A stretch of 64,000 nt of DNA from Macrostomum hystrix (GCA_950097015.1 CATNEN010000005.1:4154001-4218000); one strand, 5' to 3'; numbered from the stretch's first letter, positions 32,525-44,232 are shown. The notes: a model not told the origin generated them from the letters alone. Made by a program: numbers and translations.

Positions 32525-33945
32525 GAATCTTCCCAAACTAGAATCTTCCGAAACTAGAATCTTCACAAACTAAAATCTTTCTTAACTAGAATCTTCCTAG
32601 ACTAGAAACTTCAGAAACTTCCCAAAATAGAATCTTCCCAAACTAGAATCTTCCCAAACTAGAATCTTCCCAAATTAGAATCTTCCAAAACTAGAAACTT
32701 GCCAAACTAGAAACTTCCCAAAATAGAATCTTCCTAAACTAGAATCTTCCAAAACTAGAATCTTCCCAAAATAGAATCTTCCTAAACTAGAATCTTCCAA
32801 AACTAGAATCTTCCCAAACTAGAAACTTGCCAAAATAGAATCTTCCTAAACTAGAATCTTCCAAAACTAGAATCTTCCAAAACTAGAATCTTCCCAAACT
32901 AGAAACTTGCCAAAATAGAATCTTCCTAAACTAGAATCTTCCAAAACTAGAATCTTCCCAAACTAGAAACTTGCCAAACTAGAATCTTCCTAAACTAGAA
33001 ACTTCCAAAACTAGAATCTTCCCAAACTAGAAACTTCCCAAAAAAGAATCTTCCTAAACTAGAAACTTCCCAAACTAGAAACTTGCCAAAATAGAATCTT
33101 CCTAAACTAGAATCTTCCAAAACTAGAATCTTCCAAAACTAGAATCTTCCCAAACTAGAAACTTGCCAAAATAGAATCTTCCTAAACTAGAATCTTCCTA
33201 AACTAGAAACTTCCAAAACTAGAATCTTCCCAAACTAGAAACTTGCCAAACTAGAAGCTTTCCAAAATAGAATCTTCCTAAACTAGAATCTTCCAAAACT
33301 AGAAACTTCCCAAAATAGAACCTTCCTAAACTAGAATCTTCCCAAACTAGAAACTTCCCAAAATAGAATCTTCCTAAACTAGAAACTTCCAAAACTAGAA
33401 TCTTCCCAAACTAGAAACTTGCCAAACTAGAAACTTTCCAAAATAGAATCTTCCTAAACTAGAATCTTCCCAAACTAGAAACTTCCTAAACTAGAATCTT
33501 CCTAAACTAGAATCTTCCTAAACTAGAAACTTCCAAAACTAGAATCTTCCCAAACTAGAAACTTGCCAAACTAGAAGCTTTCCAAAATAGAATCTTCCTA
33601 AACTAGAATCTTCCAAAACTAGAAACTTCCCAAAATAGAACCTTCCTAAACTAGAATCTTCCCAAACTAGAAACTTCCCAAAATAGAACCTTCCTAAACT
33701 AGAAACTTCCAAAACTAGAATCTTCCCAAACTAGAAACTTTCCAAAATAGAATCTTCCAAAATAGAATCTTCCTAAACTAGAATCTTCCCAAACTAGAAA
33801 CTTCCTAAACTAGAATCTTCCTAAACTAGAAACTTGCCAAACTAGAATCTTCCCAAACTAGAATCTTCCCAAACTAGAAACTTGCCAAACTAGAATCTTC
33901 CTAAACTAGAAACTTGCCAAACTAGAATCTTCGAAAATTAGACTT
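32525..33945 (-). repeat. 16-bp minisatellite (AAACTAGAATCTTCCC)n with variant units
   Basis: Period 16; its reverse complement GGGAAGATTCTAGTTT resembles the 8690-9100 unit. Confidence 0.95.
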
Positions 33946-34284
33946 TTACCAAACCAGAAGATTACAAATGATAACATCAGTCTTTCATTCCAGTACTAAG
34001 TACTTCCAGTTAATCATTCTTGATTAACTAAGTAAACAATTTTTTTATAATGAAAACTTATTACATTTATAATTTAGCCTTAATAATTATGACGCAAAAA
34101 ATTAAAAACACATGTGACCGATGCTACTATAAGTATGGACATAACAAAATCGACACAAATTTTGGCTCTCACTTGCTATAAAAAATTGAAGCATTAATTA
34201 GCAAAAACCGTTTTTAGAAAAGCAGACAAGTCTGTTTTTTAAACTGTTGGGCTATTTGTACAGCTACAGCTGTAGCTGCAATTT

Positions 34285-34357
34285 TCCTCGAGCATGGAGA
34301 TTCGAACTCCCGACCTCTCTATCAGAAGGGCGATGCACTTACCACGGGACTACAAAC
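34285..34357 (-). mobile_element. tRNA-like SINE head or tRNA pseudogene
   Basis: Minus strand TAGTCCCGTGG (A-box-like) ... GTTCGAATC (B box); no convincing acceptor stem. Confidence 0.5.
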
Positions 34358-34487
34358 TACCAATGCGCATATTTTAACCGTGGATATTGAAAAGCATTGG
34401 AATACGGTAAGTGTGCACACGCCGAATAAATATAAATTCGTTACATCAGCTAATCAAACGTCATTGTTGCATTATAGCTCACAATGA

Positions 34488-36275
34488 TTATAATGCTTCA
34501 TCCGGATTCAAGGACACTCGCTTGGTCAGCCTGCTCTGCCTGTCCACAACTGAGTGATAGAAAACATGTTTCTTGCCCTCCTTTTTCCCGGGAATGGCCT
34601 GGCTAGTGATGCCCTCGTTAACGGCTAGAATCATGCCCTCGAGGTCTTCGTTCTCGTATCGACTCTCAATCACGTCGCAGAGAGTCTGGATGAAGATGGA
34701 GCCTCTGTCGGGACTCCTGTAGGCCGGCGAGTCCTCCGTGTTGGCGAAGCAGATGAGAAAGTCGCTCTCGTTTGGAATGAAGCTCGCGTCTTTCACTGGC
34801 ACGTCGCCATCGCGTTGAATGCACACCGACGATGCGCGCTCGGCCTCAAGGTGTGAGCGCACCGCCACCTGTTCGACACTGCCGCGACAGGCCTGCAAGA
34901 AGAACAGCTTCGGCTTTCGATCCAAGCCGTAGCACTTGCTTGGTTGAAACAGCATGGTCAGCTCTTTGATCATCTGGAACTGGCCGTCGCGACCATAGAT
35001 GGCGCCGTTGGTTCCGTGAGCCATGAGGAAGCAGACGAGAGTGCCGTATCTACTGTGGTTTAGCTGAGCGATCTTCGACAGCTCCCAAAAGATTTCTTTG
35101 CCCGTGAGATTTCGCCTGACCGTAACTTTGAAGCGCAAAGATTCGAAAAGCTTTTCAACTCGCATCACATCCAGCTCGGAGCCTGTGCGATTGGAAAACT
35201 GCGATTCCTTGTCGTAGATTTCGATATTGATAATTACACAATGACCCTGTGGGTCCCTCACAGGATAATAACGAATTGAAGTCCTGAAAAAAGAAAAGTT
35301 TTACAGAACAGATAAATGTTTTTTGAAAAGCTCTACTTTTCTTGCTCTAGGCTTACATCGTCTGTGACCTCATCAGCAGTTTTGTCGGTTCTCGTGTCAT
35401 TGGTGGTGGATTTAACCTGCAATTAATTGCAACCAACCGTTATGAGAAAGCAATGACGTTGACTACTGACTTACCTACGTCCTTACTTACTCGACGCTTG
35501 ATATCTGTCTGATGAAGCTCTTAGAACGAGGCACAGGTTCTGCTAGATCCTCTGCTCCTCCGATCTCCTCTTCCGAGAAGTCATCGTCGGAGTCGAGGCT
35601 AAAGGAAATAGAAAGAGTTAATGAAGACACAAATCGCAAAGCTCTAGAGCCAAAAATGAATCTATAATTTCATTCTTACTTGTCTGTCTTGAAGCCGCGC
35701 TTCGCGGTTGACCTACAATCGAGCAGAATAAACATATGCGAATCAAGTAACTCAGGAGACAAGTCCTTTGCAATCAACAATTTAGCGAATATAGCCAGCT
35801 GAAAAACGAATGTAATTCACCAGTTTCTCAGCAGTTGCACAATGTCCCAGTGTTCGTGCATCTCCGCCAAGGATTCGGCGGTGTCGCCGTCTATGTCTAG
35901 AGCGCCGGGGTCGCTGCCGAGTTGCAGCAGTTCGCTGGCAGCTTCCAGCTTTCCTTTCCAGCAAGCCAGCATCAGCGGTGTGCAGCCCAACTGTTTCTCT
36001 CTGGCCTCGAGATTCGCACTTGCGTTCGCTAATAGACGCAGTACAGCCAAATTGTTGGACTCGGCTGCCCAGTGCAGCGGAGTAAGTGCCTGCGGATCCC
36101 TGACGTTTTTGTCTGCGCCCAGGCTCAGCAGGAGTCGAACGCAGTCGGAGTGGCTCGATTTTGGTCCCGACTCGCCGCCCCAGGCAGCTCGCAACAGCGG
36201 AGTCTGGCCCCACTGGTCCCGACGGTTGACGTTCTGCCTGGTCGCTTGCTGGCGTAGTCGCTTCTCATCGCCCAT
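34488..36275 (-). CDS. Ankyrin-repeat-caspase fusion protein A (~483 aa; ~4 ANK repeats, acidic linker, caspase p20/p10)
   Basis: Exons 36275-35821, 35712-35680, 35598-35491, 35416-35357 and 35283-34488, all joined by phase-2 GT-AG introns; total 1452 nt, open. ANK motifs GQTPLLRAA, LTPLHWAA, GCTPLMLAC. Caspase motifs CVIIN, RTGS, MAHG, QACRG, SDFL, AYR..GSIFIQTLC. The start codon could lie further upstream. Confidence 0.9.
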
Positions 36276-36474
36276 TAGAGCCAGATTGCTCAGGGTGTTG
36301 GCCAGCTTTTGCAAGGTAGGCGGGGTGGGTGTCAAAATCTGAGCTTCTCTCAACCGAGATTCAATTTGAAACTTAAAGCGTCTCTAAACAAAAACAATTT
36401 ATCAGCAAAAAAAGTATAAATAAATTTTTAGGCACTCTCGGGAAAGTAAATTACAAAGTTAGGGAAACAACTCG

Positions 36475-36690
36475 CCAGGGCCGCCCTAGAGGACCAACCT
36501 CCAAGGCACAGTGAAGTGTACACAGCCTGACGATGAGAAAGTCAGGGCAGATGTACACACCTGTGTGAGGGGATGTCTGCGTGTCAGCGGAATGGGCAGA
36601 ATTGCCTCCTTCCTGGCTGCGGGTCTAGTGTCACCAAATGAGGTGCCATTGCCCGCAGCACTCCTACAATTATTATAATATTATTGCTTA
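36475..36690 (+). mobile_element. SINE family A, 5'-truncated copy
   Basis: Reverse complement of the 39520-39872 body; ends ...GCAGCACTCCTACAATTATTAT. Confidence 0.8.
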
Positions 36691-37574
36691 GCGCTCCTTA
36701 AGTAATTAGTTTATTAAGAAACAAAAAATGTTCTTTTGCATTGCGAAAAATACGCTTTTGCTGCGAATCATGCCCTCAATTTACAGTAGCGCTAAATTTC
36801 TCGGTATTTTTAGCCCTAACCTCTCACAATGCCTGAAGTCGTATTCTCTAACCCCCCTAGTCGTTTGTCATCGCGTCTTTCGCAATTTAGGCTCAGTGCG
36901 AGGACATTCAGCCACAAGCATTTGGACGAACCGCATGTTTTGTGCCACACAGTTCGCTGGCAATAATAAAAATAACAGGCAAAAGTTTCTGAGAATATGG
37001 TACTGATGCTTACCTTCACATGTTCATCTGTCTGATTTACTTTGCTACGGCTTGATGAAGCCATACAGTGCAAAGTATAAAGGGATAAATCTCCACAGGA
37101 AACTGAAACTGATAAAGAAGTACTGGCCAGCGAATTCGTTGTTTGAAATTTCGAAACTAGCTTACGTTGTTACAGTACACTTTAAATAACCATTTTTAGG
37201 AACACAAGACTTTACGATTCTAATTCAAACTTAGACTCAGTGTAGCTAGTGGCTTCGTCCAAGTTGAGAACAATGGCATTTGAGCGAAGCATCGTAAGAG
37301 AGAGAGAGAGCTCTTATGTCAAGAAATAAACATAAAATGCACAATTGAGAGACTGCACAATGTCAGTGGAATGAGGGCTTAGGAAAAAAGTACAAAGTCC
37401 TAACAAAACCAACACGGATGGTCGAGTTATTAAATTTTCTGGCAAAGCATCCTCGAGAGGTTTTAGAGAGTGATTTTTCGTTGCAGTAATAAGTCCTTAT
37501 TACTAAATTGATAAGCAGTACGGTAAAACACGCAGTTGTAAGGTACTGACAATGCCTTCCAGTACAGCTGAAAT

Positions 37575-37935
37575 ATAAAAAAATTGCAGGAGGGCTGCGG
37601 GCCATGCCAAATCATTTGGTGACAGTCTAACCGCAGCCAGTTAGGACGCAATTCTGCCCATTTCGCTAACTCCTGAGCACACACGCACACAGATACTGTA
37701 CTCAGACACACACTTACTCAGGTGAGTACATCTGCCCTGACCTTCTCATCGTCAGGCAGTGTGCACTTTCACTGTGCCTTGGAGGTTGGCCCTCAAAGGC
37801 GTAAATTGCTTGACAAGCCCCCAAGCCTTCTCTCTGCGACAGCGTCCCAAATGAATGTGGCCTCGCCACGGAATCGAGCTCAGGGACCTTGGTGCGAGAG
37901 GCAGAGGCGTTAGACCATCCTGTCACTCAACCACC
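37575..37935 (-). mobile_element. SINE family A, near full-length (tRNA head)
   Basis: Colinear with 39520-39872; B-box-like GCTCGATTCC; tail GCAGCCCTCCTGCAATTTTT. Confidence 0.85.
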
Positions 37936-38519
37936 TTTTTACCTCCATCGTTCACCCACTTTAAAAATATTCCAGGTATTTTTTTTACATCAATTATCCT
38001 TCTTTACGGAGTTGTTGAGACACACATTTTTTATAAACAAACGCAAATCAGCTCCTACAGTTATGTATGTATTTCACATCTGAAAGAAATACATAAAGTC
38101 TTAAATTACTAAAAAACGAAAAAATGACGCACAGCAAAGAAATAGTGCTTGATTGAAAAGTCGTACACAAAGTGTGGCAATAATTGTTTTTCGAACACAC
38201 GAGACTTTGATCTTATACGAGTACATACTCGAGAAAATAATATCATTCAAAGAATGTACGAGCTAATATACGGTTATAATAGAAATAATAATTCAACGAG
38301 GCAGTATTACAGTGATTGCATTGTATTTTTTCACAGACTGATTTACCATACGGTTTAATGGGGCTAAGTGGCATAGCGTTAATGCGTAAACAAAGTTCTT
38401 AAGCTCGAATACATGGTGAGGCCACACTCATTTACATAGCTAAAGTCAGGACAATTGTACATCCCCGTTGGTGTTTGAGTTGATTATAATAATAATTGAT
38501 CACATCTGCCCCAATTGGG

Positions 38520-38670
38520 TCAGATGTGCAGCCGACAGCACAGCCGCAGCTATTGCGCGGTGCATCTGAAGGCAGCGAACGGCTGTTCAGTCCATGGACT
38601 GGGGGGACGCCACACCAACCGTGATGCGTAATAGCCCGTAGCCCTCCTGCAATTTTTATTTTATTCTACC
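38520..38670 (+). mobile_element. Retroposon 3' fragment ending in the SINE-A-type tail
   Basis: Ends GTAGCCCTCCTGCAATTTTTATTTTATT, but the upstream body differs from SINE A. Confidence 0.45.
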
Positions 38671-38756
38671 GTATGGCTTAGATCAACCACCGTGACAGAG
38701 TTTTTCTAAACAAATAAAAAAGAATTGAATTTGCAAAACTAATACCGAAGCCTCCT

Positions 38757-41700
38757 TCAGGCGACCAGGTGCGGGTTGAAGGACACCTTCTTGGATAACC
38801 GGCCTGTCTTTTCCACCACAGCCTGGTAGAAGGCTCCATCGCCGCCCTGAATAGGTCTGCTTGTGACGCGACTGTTAACCTCGAGGATCATGTCCTCCAG
38901 GAACTCGGTCTGATATTGCTCCTCAATTACGTCGCACAAAGTTTGCACAAAAATCGAACCATTTTTGGGATCTCTGTAGGCCGGAGAATCCTCTGTGTTG
39001 GCGTAGCAGATCAGGAAGTCGCTCTCATTCGGACAGTTCTGCGGATTCCTAACTGGGACGTTTCCATCGTGCTGCACCTCTGTGGGTTCCGAAACGTGGC
39101 CGCTGGCACCGCGACAGGCCTGGGTGAAGAAGAGCTTCGGCTTGCGCGCCAGACCTTGGCACTTTGCTGGCTGAAACAGCGAGACCAGCTCCTTGAGCAG
39201 CTGGTATTGACCGTCGCGGCCATAGATAGCACCTTTGGTGCCGTGAGCCATTAGGAAACAGACAAAAGTGCCAAACTGGCTGTGCTCGGCGCGGGCAAAG
39301 TTCGTCATCTCCCAGAAGATCTCTTGGCCTGGTTAGGTAGAGAAAACTTAAAAACGGTTTCGAAATGTTTGAAATAACTGCTAACCCACCATTGCGGGCA
39401 GAAATTGGAGGTTTCCTCGGCCCTAGGCTCGGCATGGATTTTTGGTAGGCTTTTTACCATTACCCGCTGCTAGCCGGGGTGCGGGGCAGAGCCCGCGCTA
39501 GGTGTGTGTGTGTATTAAATAATAGTAATAAACATAATTGCAGGAGGGCTGCGGGCAATGGCACGTCATTTGGTGACACTAGACCCGCAGCCAGCGAGGA
39601 GGCCATTCTGCCCATTTCGCTGACTCCTGAGCACACAAGCACACAGATACTGTACTCAGGCACACACTCACTCAGGTGTGTACACCTGCCCTGACCTTCT
39701 CATTGTCAGGCAGTGTACACTTTCACTGTGTCTTGGAGGTTGGCCCTCAAGGGTGTAAATTGCATCCAAGCCTTCTTCTCCGCAGCTGCGCCCCAAATGA
39801 ATGTGACCTCGCCGTGGAATCGAGCCCAGGGACCTTGGTGCGAGAGGCAACCGCTCTGCCACTCAACCCCATATAATTTATTGAGAATACTGTTAATTAT
39901 TATCCGAGTATTAATAAATGTCTATGGTCTCGCCATAGAGGTTTATACAGAGAAATGCCAGTTGTCCTTGGCACCAAGGTCTTCGACAATAATCACTGAA
40001 TATATTGACGATGCCGACGTCGAACGGCTTTGAAAGTTAGTTCATCGTAACGGGCGGAAAATTTTGATTCAGATGATGGAATTTCACGAAAATCGGTTGT
40101 TCGGTTTGGCAGCTATCCTGAAGTATAGGCAACGGGTATTTGAAATACCCCCATGGACATTCCACACGCGGAAAATATTGGACTTTCTACTGTTAGAAAT
40201 TCTTGCTAACTATCCAACTTCGGTTAGCGTTACAGAAAATTACCTGTGAGATCCTGGAATGACCAAACTTTGAAGCCCAACGATTTGAACAACTGTTTCA
40301 CCCGCCGGGCATCTAATCTGGAGCCTTCTCGACGACTAAAGTTCGACTCTGGGTCGTAGTTCTCGATGTTTATTACTACACAATGTCCCTGTGGCTCGGT
40401 GACTGGGTACACATTGCGTAGGTGAGCTCTGCGGGTGACAGATAAGGTGTGCGATCAAGCATTCATGCAAATTCAATACTCACTCGTACTTACCCAGCGT
40501 CCGAGTGACTCAAAATTGGAGTCGGTGAGTGAGGCCCCATTCTACAACAGCAAATTAGAATGGTTAAAATACGGAGCTAACTACTAAACTGCTAGCAAAA
40601 TTCACCCTTACCCAATGAGATCCAAAGATCTGGTCTCATCAATCTGTTGAGGCTGGAACATTTCCATCTTCATCTGCTCCAAAAAGTGCACGCTGAAAAT
40701 AATGATCGGAGCAGTGGTCGCTCAAAAAAGCTGTCTGTTATTATGCAAAAAATATTACGAAGATTGTATAGTTTAGTCATTTACTCAGCATCCCCATCAG
40801 TTTCTGCTCCACCGGTGACTTTTGCCGATGCTACAGAGAAGTTCTTCGACCTGAAGATTTTCAGAGATAAGACAAGAAGTGAAAAACTCATTTCTCGTAT
40901 CACTTTGCTAGCATAGGCAATACAAAAGCGTTTGAGTTGTTGTTATCAGTACGAGCGAATGTATGGTTTTAGGTTGCACTCTACTAACCAGTTTTTTTCG
41001 AGTGTTGTATAGTTGGCTCTTAGCTCTGTGCTCTCTATCTCTACCTCACTCTCTTCCTCTGATTGGGTCCCACTTCCTTACCCTTCCTGTCTTCTAATTG
41101 GTTCCCACCCCATCACCCCTTCCTGGCTTCTAATTGGTTCCCAATCTTTTACACCTTCTCAATCTCAAATCTCAAATCAATTATTAAATGCCGTTTTTAT
41201 TTTTAGCGTGGCTAATTTACACTCGAGAACGACGACAGCATGTTCAGTCCGTTGACTGGGGAGAGCCACGGCAACAGCGCATACTCTTCACTTAATAAAC
41301 ACTGGTATTCGTTTTGTATCCACATCTGGGTTAAAGCAATGGGTGACTTCAGTATCTCCCCTAATTGGCCTAAAATTCCGAAGTGCTAGGAATGGGACAG
41401 CGAGGCTCACCAGTCAGACAGGAGTCGCACAATGTCACCGTGCTCGTACATTTCAGCGAGTGACGCCGCAGTGTCACCGTCTTTATCCCTGACGCTGGGA
41501 TCGCAGCCGAACTGCAGCAGCTCTCTGGCCGCTTTGAAGTTGCCTCGCCAGCTAGCCAGCATCAGAGGCGTCAGGCCTCGCTTGTCCGTCGCATTGAGGT
41601 GAGCTCCGGCCTCGGCCAGGAGCTTCAACACGGCCAGGTTGTCCGACTCAGCCGTCCAGTGCAGTGCCGACACACCGTCCGGGTCCTTAACATTGACATC

Positions 41701-41880
41701 GGCGCCAAGGCTCAACAGAAGTCTAGCACAATCGGCGTGTCCTTGATTGGGCACGAACTCGCCAGCCCAGGCGGCTCGCAGCAGCGGAGTCTGGCCCCAT
41801 TGGTCGCGCCAGTTGGCGTTCTGTCGGTTGGCCAGCTCTCGCAGCCGTCCGATGTCGCCCATCAAGGCCAGATTGCTCAT
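38757..41880 (-). CDS. Ankyrin-repeat-caspase fusion protein B (~446 aa)
   Basis: Exons 41880-41411, 40850-40785, 40541-40494, 40428-40244 and 39328-38757; phases 2,2,2,1; total 1341 nt, open. In-frame stop upstream of ATG 41880. MAHG and QACRG intact. Confidence 0.9.
39520..39872 (-). mobile_element. SINE family A, full-length, inside the caspase-domain intron of gene B
   Basis: tRNA-like head GGGGTTGAGTGGCAGAGCGG...GGCTCGATTCC; shared body; AT-rich tail. Confidence 0.87.
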
Positions 41881-41939
41881 TGAGTTGGCTCTCTGGGGTT
41901 GCGGTTGTTAATTTGGATGGGCAAACTTGGCACCTTGGA

Positions 41940-42140
41940 CTAGGCTGGACGCCACACCCACTCCCTCACACTCACACCCACACCCACCCATTTAACAGCT
42001 GAACAGCTGGGTGAACTGCAGCAATGCAGAGTTAAATGTCTTGCTAAAGGTCTTTTCCTGTAGAGTCGAGAATCGAACCTCCGACATTTCTGAGTCGTGA
42101 GTCGAGAGGAATCCGACGCCCTAACCACTAGGCTACTACC
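41940..42140 (-). mobile_element. SINE family C (tRNA head plus central domain)
   Basis: A box TAGCCTAGTGG, B box GGTTCGATTC, then CTTTAGCAAGACATTTAACTC...TTCACCCAGCTG...AAATGGG, which resembles conserved SINE core domains. Confidence 0.7.
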
Positions 42141-42214
42141 CCTACTAGATTAGACCCCACTGGGGCTACAATGAGACCTGATGCTGGTCCATCCACTGGG
42201 GTACTGAGACCCCA

Positions 42215-42915
42215 CTAGGCCACAACCCCAACTGGGCCACAACCCCCACTGGGCCACAACCCCCACTGGGCCACAACCCCCACTAGGCCACAACCCCCAC
42301 TAGGCCACAACCCCCACTAGGCCACAACCCCCACTAGGCCACAACCCCCACTGGGCCACAACCCCCACTGGGCCACAACCCCCACTGGGCCACAACCCCA
42401 ACTGGGCCACAACCCCAACTGGGCCACAACCCCCACTGGGCCACAACCCCCACTGGGCCACAACCCCCACTGGGCCACAACCCCCACTAGGCCACAACCC
42501 CCACTGGGCCACAACCCCCACTGGGCCACAACCCCCACTAGGCCACAACCCCCACTAGGCCACAACCCCCACTAGGCCACAACCCCCACTAGGCCACAAC
42601 CCCCACTAGGCCACAACCCCCACTGGGCCACAACCCCAACTGGGCCACAACCCCCACTGGGCCACAACCCCCACTGGGCCACAACCCCCACTGGGCCACA
42701 ACCCCAACTGGGCCACAACCCCAACTGGGCCACAACCCCCACTGGGCCACAACCCCCACTGGGCCACAACCCCCACTAGGCCACAACCCCCACTGGGCCA
42801 CAACCCCAACTGGGCCACAACCCCCACTGGGCCACAACCCCCACTGGGCCACAACCCCCACTGGGCCACAACCCCAACTGGGCCACAACCCCCACTGGGC
42901 CACAACCCCCACTAG
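42215..42915. repeat. 17-bp minisatellite (CCACAACCCCCACTRGG)n; G-rich on the minus strand
   Basis: Period 17. Confidence 0.96.
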
Positions 42916-44232
42916 GCTACAAGCCCCACAAGACTGCAGCCCTTACTAGATGACGAGCCCTACTAGGCTACAACCCTTAATTTGTTGCAATCCAACATGT
43001 GTGAATGTGTGTTATTGTACAGTATCACTGTCCTGGCGTGCATAGGGGTCAGCGGAATAGACAGAATTGTCACCTCTCTGACTGCTTCTCGACCGTCGCC
43101 AAATTACACTTCATTGCATTTTACTGTTCTATGATAAAATTTACCATTTCAATTATTATCCATAACAGTTCTAAAAATAACACACAAAGTAGAATTCAAA
43201 ATTCAAAATTCAACAGATTCCAAAACTTAAAATGTTTACCTCTTCCTGATCCTTTTTCATGCCCCATTCGTTGGTCATTATGAACAGTGAAGTCAAGTTT
43301 CGGTTATTCAAAATTCAAAATGTGCTGAAAAATTTTGTGCCTTAGGGAAAAGAAAAAATTGAAGCTGCGAAAATTACTAAACACAAGAAATTGGAGTGAA
43401 CATATTAAAGTTTGAGCTGAATGTAGTTTAAGCAACTTATTAAGCTGAGACAAGAACTGTAGCTATAGAAAGAGCAGAAATGAGCTGATGCAGTACTCAC
43501 GCGGAGAGGTTGAGAATCTAACACAATAGGAGTGCGTCGATAGGAGTGTACAGTTTATTTAGTGTACACAGGAGATTTCAGTACAATGGCTTCCTCACCT
43601 GTCTCTACACTCTATACACCAACCAGTATTTTAGGCGAAAATGACGACAAGACAGGAAAGTGGTTACCAATGCCAACAACAATCTTCTAGACAGCTCTGG
43701 ATTGAACGAAATAAGTAATCTGTACTTTTGTGTGATTTGTCTGCAGGCATACCCAATTCATGTACTAAATCTAGTACAAGTATAAAGCGTCATTTCTTGA
43801 TTTGAGCGAATATAAGTGACAATCAACTAATAAATACAAACCTTTGGCTCATTTGACCTAAGCACACAAACTCATTTGAGTAATTTTATATTATATTTTA
43901 GTAATTACTCATTAACTTTCAAAAGCGATAGTTTTCATGTATTTGCGATGCGCAGGAAAATCGTTTGAAAAAATCTTTGAAATACGCAAATATGCTAGAT
44001 TTGTAATCGCAGGTGCAGTTGTACGAGGATAATTATTCTGGAAAATAATAGTTTCTTAGTTAATTAGTAAATAGCGATGGTACTACAGCACTTTACGCTC
44101 GTAAAAGCATGAAACACAGAAGATGGGACTAAAAATAGGTGGTGTTTCGCTTGAGTAAACAATTCTATGCTTCGCGCAATAATAGTTAGGAAAAAATTTC
44201 CATTAATGCATCAGCGCTTAAATTATTCACCT

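Follow-up and report, generated by a model that had tools for sequence, protein, structure and literature searches.

A tandem pair of ankyrin-repeat caspase genes in the free-living flatworm Macrostomum hystrix

Two sets of open reading frames (ORFs) lie on the minus strand at 34488-41880 in a 64,000-nucleotide (nt) stretch of DNA from Macrostomum hystrix, the whole of which is called the window here. In each set, an ORF with ankyrin repeats (ANK) is located upstream of ORFs that encode a caspase. This arrangement raises the question of whether the ankyrin and caspase parts are separate neighbours or exons of two fused genes and, if they are fused, to which caspases such genes are related. The evidence points, with a probability of roughly 0.8, to a pair of genes (A and B) that are expressed tandem duplicates of the flatworm ANK-caspase family, carried by a free-living, Macrostomum-type flatworm.

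The initial annotation had suggested that this architecture was perhaps unrecorded. It has in fact been published, and database entries for it exist for Macrostomum lignano and, among further species, for Schistosoma, Echinococcus, and Taenia. Horkan et al. 2024 (PMC11463336) described ‘ANK caspases’ as a monophyletic platyhelminth group for which the DED caspases are the sister group, and that was noticed first in Schistosoma (Lee et al. 2014, cited in that paper). The same authors suggested that ANK caspases are initiators with an unknown activator. They reported that FADD is absent from flatworms, that flatworms with ANK caspases are without DED caspases, and that among flatworms only parasites possess ANK caspases, which tied the origin of the family to parasitism. 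For M. lignano, they reported only a caspase with a kinase prodomain, placed next to the ANK-caspase group as its sister. Consequently, the novelty of the present locus is not the architecture but the finding that a free-living flatworm possesses this family, expresses it, and has expanded it.

Ankyrin and caspase exons on single transcripts

Domain content was established with Pfam profiles, searched on exon and ORF products with a cut-off of 21.4 bits for Peptidase_C14. The ANK ORF of gene A (35817-36353, minus strand) matches Ank_2 at 1.5e-34, and that of gene B (41407-41880, minus strand) at 1.2e-39. The caspase of gene A is found in one ORF (34488-35261, minus strand; Peptidase_C14 at 1.8e-43, 149 bits, profile positions 2-215 of 233), and that of gene B in two (both minus strand: 40230-40412, 2.4e-09, 37.7 bits; and 38757-39308, 1.2e-31, 110.7 bits). 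The Peptidase_C14 profile (PF00656; MEROPS C14A) matches both the large and the small subunit in either gene. The Ank_2 and Peptidase_C14 scores lie well clear of the respective cut-offs. Across all exon products of the two genes, Pfam recovered only Ank families and Peptidase_C14, with no CARD and no DED (PF01335). The two genes are paralogues with 55% identity.

The separate ANK and caspase ORFs, which had been listed as such in the initial annotation and were found again with the same domains by Pfam, do not reflect separate genes. The stop codon that appears to end each ANK exon is overlapped by a GT splice donor, at 35821 in gene A (AAC TG|gtgaat) and at 41411 in gene B (GAC TG|gtgagc), as the same annotation had noticed. 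Short phase-2 exons with canonical AG/GT borders then link the ANK exon to the caspase in both genes, and the spliced frames first proposed for them, 1452 and 1341 nt in length, could be reproduced and are open. All linker exons of both genes are in phase 2 and are multiples of three. With such lengths, an open frame alone is weak evidence for the fusion, and the case is therefore carried by RNA contigs.

Four public runs of one study were taken as RNA, and their contigs were placed on 35485-41484. The share of sampled words present in public runs of this study was 0.72 for the gene A stretch and 0.43-0.49 for the gene B stretch, which equals the exonic fractions; for a DNA run it was 0.95. 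Single contigs of 1.7-2.1 kb from the four runs join ANK, linker, and caspase exons, with CT..AC borders on the plus strand that correspond to GT..AG on the minus strand. Contigs from the four runs cross the gene A junctions 36305/37014, 35821/35712, and 35680/35598, and the gene B junctions 41411/40850, 40785/40692, 40612/40541, 40494/40428, and 40244/39328. The two remaining gene A junctions, 35491/35416 and 35357/35283, are located beyond the placed stretch and were fixed by contig arithmetic. Positions 1174-1245 of a 1877-nt contig from gene A cross-match the QACRG region of gene B (39109-39180), and the gene A model puts the homologous bases, 34953-34882, at exactly these contig positions. 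Given this agreement, the ankyrin and caspase parts are carried by a single assembled transcript in gene A as well as in gene B. The tandem fusion without CARD or DED that had been proposed from the DNA is thus borne out by Pfam and by the contigs of four runs; of the junctions that had been put forward for an RNA check, 35821/35712 and 41411/40850 lie within contigs, and 35357/35283 follows from the arithmetic.

These data also bear on a trivial explanation, namely that the fusion is a read-through product or an assembly chimera of separate ANK and caspase genes. Contigs can bridge neighbouring genes, and one M. lignano protein model considered below (P0184) itself wrongly merges two genes. 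However, a canonical donor removes the ANK-exon stop, and the frame stays open over four to five junctions in both paralogues. Identical joints were assembled independently in the four runs, none of the contigs stops at the ANK donor, and the ANK-linker-caspase order recurs in M. lignano orthologues and at least eight paralogue clusters. An artefact of this kind is highly improbable, and was rejected on the splice donors, the joints of the four runs, and the M. lignano orthologues.

The contigs also improved the gene models (Table 1). Those of the initial annotation were nearly right, but lacked the first coding exon of gene A and an 81-nt exon of gene B. With these exons added, the coding sequence of gene A is 1533 nt (510 amino acids, aa) and that of gene B is 1422 nt (473 aa). 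The first joint of gene A, 36305/37014, skips 708 nt with GT..AG borders in contigs of the four runs, which puts the start of the ANK exon at acceptor 36305. The longest contig continues as far as 37275, so that exon 1 extends over at least 37275..37014, and the ATG at 37064 is in frame, reading MASSSRSKVNQTDEHVK|LANTLSNLALMG... across the junction. The 81-nt exon of gene B is kept in its M. lignano orthologue (DVHFLEQMKM...).

Table 1. Exons of the two ankyrin-repeat caspase genes in window coordinates.
Feature	Coordinates	Strand	Content and support
Gene A exon 1	37014..37275	-	5' untranslated region and probable start ATG at 37064; encodes MASSSRSKVNQTDEHVK
Gene A exon 2	35821..36305	-	Five-repeat ANK module; phase-2 end at TG|gtgaat; contig pieces 35819-36305
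Gene A exon 3	35680..35712	-	33-nt linker; joints 35821/35712 and 35680/35598 in four runs
Gene A exon 4	35491..35598	-	108-nt acidic/Ser-rich linker, DSDDDFSEEE...; contig piece 35489-35598
Gene A exon 5	35357..35416	-	60-nt linker; canonical AG/GT, open frame; length from contig arithmetic
Gene A exon 6	34488..35283	-	Whole caspase domain, with MAHG His, QACRG Cys, and the linker site IQRD|G; ends in the stop codon
Gene B exon 1, coding part	41411..41880	-	ATG at 41880 and five-repeat ANK module; donor TG|gtgagc; joint 41411/40850
Gene B exon 2	40785..40850	-	66-nt linker; joints 41411/40850 and 40785/40692
Gene B exon 3	40612..40692	-	81-nt linker; contig pieces 40612-40692 in several runs
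Gene B exon 4	40494..40541	-	48-nt linker; joints 40612/40541 and 40494/40428
Gene B exon 5	40244..40428	-	N-terminal part of caspase large subunit; contig pieces 40243-40428
Gene B exon 6	38757..39328	-	Remaining caspase (MAHG, QACRG, VQHD|G, AYR) and stop codon; joint 40244/39328; contig pieces 38635-39327

Two minor features lie in the untranslated regions (UTRs). The 5' UTR of gene A contains an upstream ORF of three codons (ATG GTT ATT TAA) at 37193, ahead of the probable start at 37064. The 3' UTR of gene B runs to about 38635 and, in one run (X6), has an extra GT..AG joint at 38645-38745 that skips 99 nt just past the stop codon, an intron of the 3' UTR whose removal is optional.

Protein anatomy

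Each protein consists of an N-terminal five-repeat ANK module of ~155 aa, a disordered linker of ~70 aa encoded by the small phase-2 exons, and a caspase, with prodomain and linker together comprising ~225-250 aa. AlphaFold2 modelled the ANK exon of gene B with high confidence (predicted local distance difference test, pLDDT, 96.7; predicted template modelling score, pTM, 0.90) as ten helices, that is, five helix pairs or ankyrin repeats. The module aligns over its full length among the M. lignano paralogues, which have a common N-terminal L-x-x-L-A-x-x-G motif. Structural searches with it in the PDB and AlphaFold DB returned generic ankyrin proteins (ankyrin, DARPins, tankyrase ARC at template modelling scores of 0.83-0.86, ASZ1, and gankyrin) and gave no pointer to a binding partner. 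Judged by these likenesses, the module looks like a generic five-repeat unit for binding proteins or peptides.

A full-length fold was made on the M. lignano orthologue of gene B, which is 78% identical and serves as a stand-in for the window proteins. Both the ANK and the caspase domain were predicted confidently, while the prodomain linker (142-189) and the intersubunit linker (320-350) fell below pLDDT 50 and the pTM was 0.53. The model therefore indicates that the ANK module is a flexibly tethered unit rather than part of a fixed two-domain body. Such tethering has consequences for a possible role of the module as an autoinhibitor that folds back on the protease, or as an exosite that brings in substrates, in place of a recruiter. 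Designed ankyrin proteins do bind and inhibit caspases (Schweizer 2007, Flutsch 2014, cited in PMC11463336), and Asp-rich stretches in the linkers (DSDDD in gene A, AETDGDAD in gene B) could permit removal of the prodomain. The AlphaFold2 model has no confident inter-domain packing, however, and its 48-residue linker has a pLDDT of 22-36; this is a weak counter-argument, as the output lists no contacts. Overall, autoinhibition or substrate delivery is considered quite unlikely.

The caspase domain has its best PDB match in caspase-8 (1i4e_B, 2.5e-32), with caspase-8, -7, -3, and -9 ranging from 1e-28 to 1e-32. MAHG, QACRG, the Arg of NRTGS/RREGS, and the Arg of AYR align with the motifs of caspase-8 His317, Cys360, Arg260, and Arg413. 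The retention of the catalytic His and Cys and of the Asp-pocket Arg/Gln/Arg residues, which had been read from the DNA at the outset, thus holds against caspase-8 and the family: the catalytic pair and the S1 pocket are intact in both genes and conserved across the family alignment. By these motifs, the domains are catalytically intact and predicted Asp-specific proteases, and by their best PDB match they belong to the caspase-8 lineage.

Further resemblance to caspase-8 is found in the features of an initiator. Genes A and B have a long prodomain, and the putative intersubunit sites IQRD|G (gene A), VQHD|G (gene B), and HETD|A (M. lignano P0017) align with LEMD384|S of caspase-8. In addition to this intersubunit Asp and the long prodomain, caspase-8 shares with them the catalytic His and Cys and the S1 Arg/Gln/Arg residues. 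In contrast, caspase-8 carries DEDs, of which Pfam finds none in genes A and B.

Relatives in Macrostomum and the flatworm family

The close relatives of both genes are all M. lignano proteins, with best identities of 58-83%, values too low for the window to come from M. lignano itself. An unrestricted search of representative proteins gave no match above 51% identity, and length-restricted searches with the caspase exon alone (9 and 2 matches) gave neither the proteins of the window themselves nor an orthologue from other species. The most informative relative is A0A1I8J1T4 (P0184, 791 aa), a UniProt entry in which two tandem ANK caspase genes, with a truncated second copy, have been merged into one model. 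The gene B orthologue occupies its residues 1-438, at an identity of 78% over the whole length and of 83% within the caspase domain. Residues 439-791, together with P0001, are A-like: they are 58% identical overall and 69% over 119 caspase-domain tree columns, and share the acidic linker motif. Since P0184 has a B orthologue followed by an A-like copy, the B-then-A tandem would predate the split of the two species. By this comparison, the order is common to M. lignano and M. hystrix.

Many other M. lignano entries in NCBI and UniProt with ANK and Peptidase_C14 (A0A1I8J6A3, P0001; PAA56209.1, P0010; PAA94436.1, P0017; and others) have the same architecture as P0184 and the window genes. Like P0184, they differ from the window genes in being automatic, unnamed, and partly truncated or merged models, without an RNA-checked structure. 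In all, M. lignano has at least eight clusters of such proteins. Some of these carry two ANK modules, an ankyrin-kinase combination, or Roc, unlike genes A and B. PAA47029.1 (P0058) is an ANK, protein-kinase, and caspase protein, and PAA63380.1 (P0022) a Ras/Roc and caspase protein; ANK, kinase, and Roc are presumably the modules of DAP kinase.

The position of the genes was examined in a tree of 38 caspase domains, 22 of them flatworm sequences, into which ANK caspases of Schistosoma, Trichobilharzia, Cichlidogyrus, Hymenolepis, Taenia, Echinococcus, and Anoplocephala were taken. All 22 flatworm ANK caspases group in a single clade (93/95) that lies next to the DED caspases. Genes A and B fall within a Macrostomum-specific clade (starred in the tree; 97/95), in which gene B and its M. 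lignano orthologue are paired at 100/98. They lie outside the branch nearest the parasite genes, which is M. lignano P0017 (91/77); a topology in which P0017 joins the remaining Macrostomum genes is not rejected (approximately unbiased, AU, test, p = 0.216). The mollusc, brachiopod, and vertebrate relatives carry the DED (PF01335), and genes A and B are related to them in the protease domain only. A further character comes from the motif GSWFIQ: in most aligned flatworm ANK caspases, both of Macrostomum and of parasites, Ile, Val, or Leu stands in place of its Trp, and the motif becomes G(S/T)(I/V)(F/Y)(I/V)Q. This loss is a shared derived character and supports the grouping. Genes A and B are thus members of the published ANK-caspase family and belong to a Macrostomum-specific expansion.

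Several observations weigh against the overall interpretation of genes A and B. A topology that takes the Macrostomum clade out of the ANK group is 8.4 log-likelihood units worse, at an AU p of 0.058; on this alignment, monophyly of the Macrostomum genes with the neodermatan ANK caspases appears well but not decisively supported. The ANK regions match those of cestodes and monogeneans at only ~1e-7 to 1e-3, and a search with them gave no match to schistosome ANK regions. Because ankyrin repeats are too generic, a single origin of the Macrostomum and parasite prodomains is unproven. Some Macrostomum paralogues are without an Asp at the aligned site of the intersubunit linker, and self-cleavage there is therefore not universal in the family. 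In addition, the type of the sequencing runs was only guessed and contigs represent the dominant isoform, so that a minor caspase-only or ANK-only transcript may exist. Finally, a full-text literature search found no functional study of any ANK caspase, and no other paper that uses the term.

The parasite members help to define what is common to the family. The entries from S. mansoni (‘subfamily C14A unassigned peptidase’, P0190 and P0202) and from E. granulosus and T. solium (‘Caspase-8’, P0217 and P0216) have in common with genes A and B an N-terminal ANK prodomain, a disordered linker, a C-terminal caspase with QACRG, and the lack of a CARD or DED. They differ in size: the parasite proteins are 700-825 aa in length, with a prodomain of ~450 aa and long low-complexity linkers, whereas genes A and B encode 473-510 aa and one compact five-repeat module.

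Expressed ANK caspases in a free-living flatworm contradict the distribution reported so far, in which the family is exclusively parasitic (PMC11463336). Their presence in a free-living and early-branching lineage, supported by RNA, would place the origin of the family earlier than the parasitic flatworms, and would remove the link with parasitism.

Ankyrin repeats and caspases also occur together outside the flatworms. The annelid Alitta virens has a caspase with ANK (PMC11463336), and the jellyfish Sanderia has an ANK and caspase protein (P0019) that has a long branch and does not group within the flatworm clade. According to cluster summaries of the ESM Atlas, ANK with Peptidase_C14 is also found in Arthropoda (55 members, ~951 aa) and in bacteria (Thermodesulfobacteriota, Nitrospirota); a published statement holds that ANK caspases are not seen in ecdysozoans. 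The arthropod and bacterial proteins are probably independent fusions. Given its occurrence in an annelid, a jellyfish, arthropods, and bacteria, the domain pair has probably arisen more than once.

Possible activation and flanking repeats

The anatomy of genes A and B suggests how an initiator-type caspase might work when an ANK module stands in for the paired DEDs as its recruitment interface. The module would bind a protein or peptide partner, and this binding could raise the local concentration of the zymogen, leading to dimerisation and activation. The zymogen might then cut its own intersubunit linker, the product of gene A at IQRD|G and that of gene B at VQHD|G. We infer these steps from the affinity with caspase-8, from a prodomain that is long and tethered, and from the alignment of the Asp, the anatomy alone being observed. 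As FADD is reported absent from flatworms (PMC11463336), the activation platform of ANK caspases must differ from that of caspase-8.

The module could instead be the direct receptor of a small molecule, or of a ligand that derives from pathogens or damage, and so dimerise the caspase without an adaptor. The analogy is with RNase L, in which an ankyrin sensor is combined with a kinase-like and an RNase part. The likeness is one of concept only, in that both have an ANK stack at the N-terminus, followed by an effector that is active as a dimer; apart from the generic ANK fold, the two are not similar in sequence or structure, and RNase L is absent among the best matches listed in the PDB and AlphaFold DB searches. 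A ligand sensor would suit animals that have neither FADD nor, where ANK caspases are present, DED caspases (PMC11463336), and a module that is predicted to be autonomous and flexibly tethered. It would also suit the expansion in Macrostomum, which extends to at least eight clusters with single or double ANK modules, ANK with kinase, and Roc, and which is typical of immune families. Nothing found here points to ligand binding, however. The ANK stack is consensus-like, its nearest structures (tankyrase ARC, ASZ1, and gankyrin) bind peptides or proteins, and orthologues are 78-83% conserved between species and are thus not hypervariable. Direct sensing of a ligand is unlikely, and recruitment through a protein or peptide partner is the preferred reading of the module.

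A broader proposal, which at present seems doubtful, extends recruitment by protein or peptide partners to the family as a whole. Ankyrin repeats may have taken over the role of the death-fold platform, and the Macrostomum expansion might represent a set of death or immune sensors, each paralogue responding to its own peptide or protein cue without a death fold. Macrostomum supports RNA interference and transgenesis. It would therefore be a tractable free-living model for caspase activation without a death-fold domain, a subject that also bears on drug targets in schistosomes and tapeworms.

The sequence around the genes contains two kinds of repeat. An interspersed repeat of ~330 nt is present as direct copies at 37577-37903 and 39531-39849 (88-89%) and as an inverted partial copy at 36514-36677, and is located in the region between genes A and B and in the last intron of gene B. 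Rfam and tRNA scans of 33500-43000, which include this repeat, gave no match. The depth of transcript contigs on it is in the hundreds to thousands, compared with about 10 for the genes. The second repeat is a minisatellite with a 17-nt unit (CCCCACTGGGCCACAAC), which occupies 42210-42929, ~330 nt upstream of the gene B start codon, in 42 copies with 96% matches, and gives rise to spurious long ORFs (WPSGGCGPVGVVAQWGL...).

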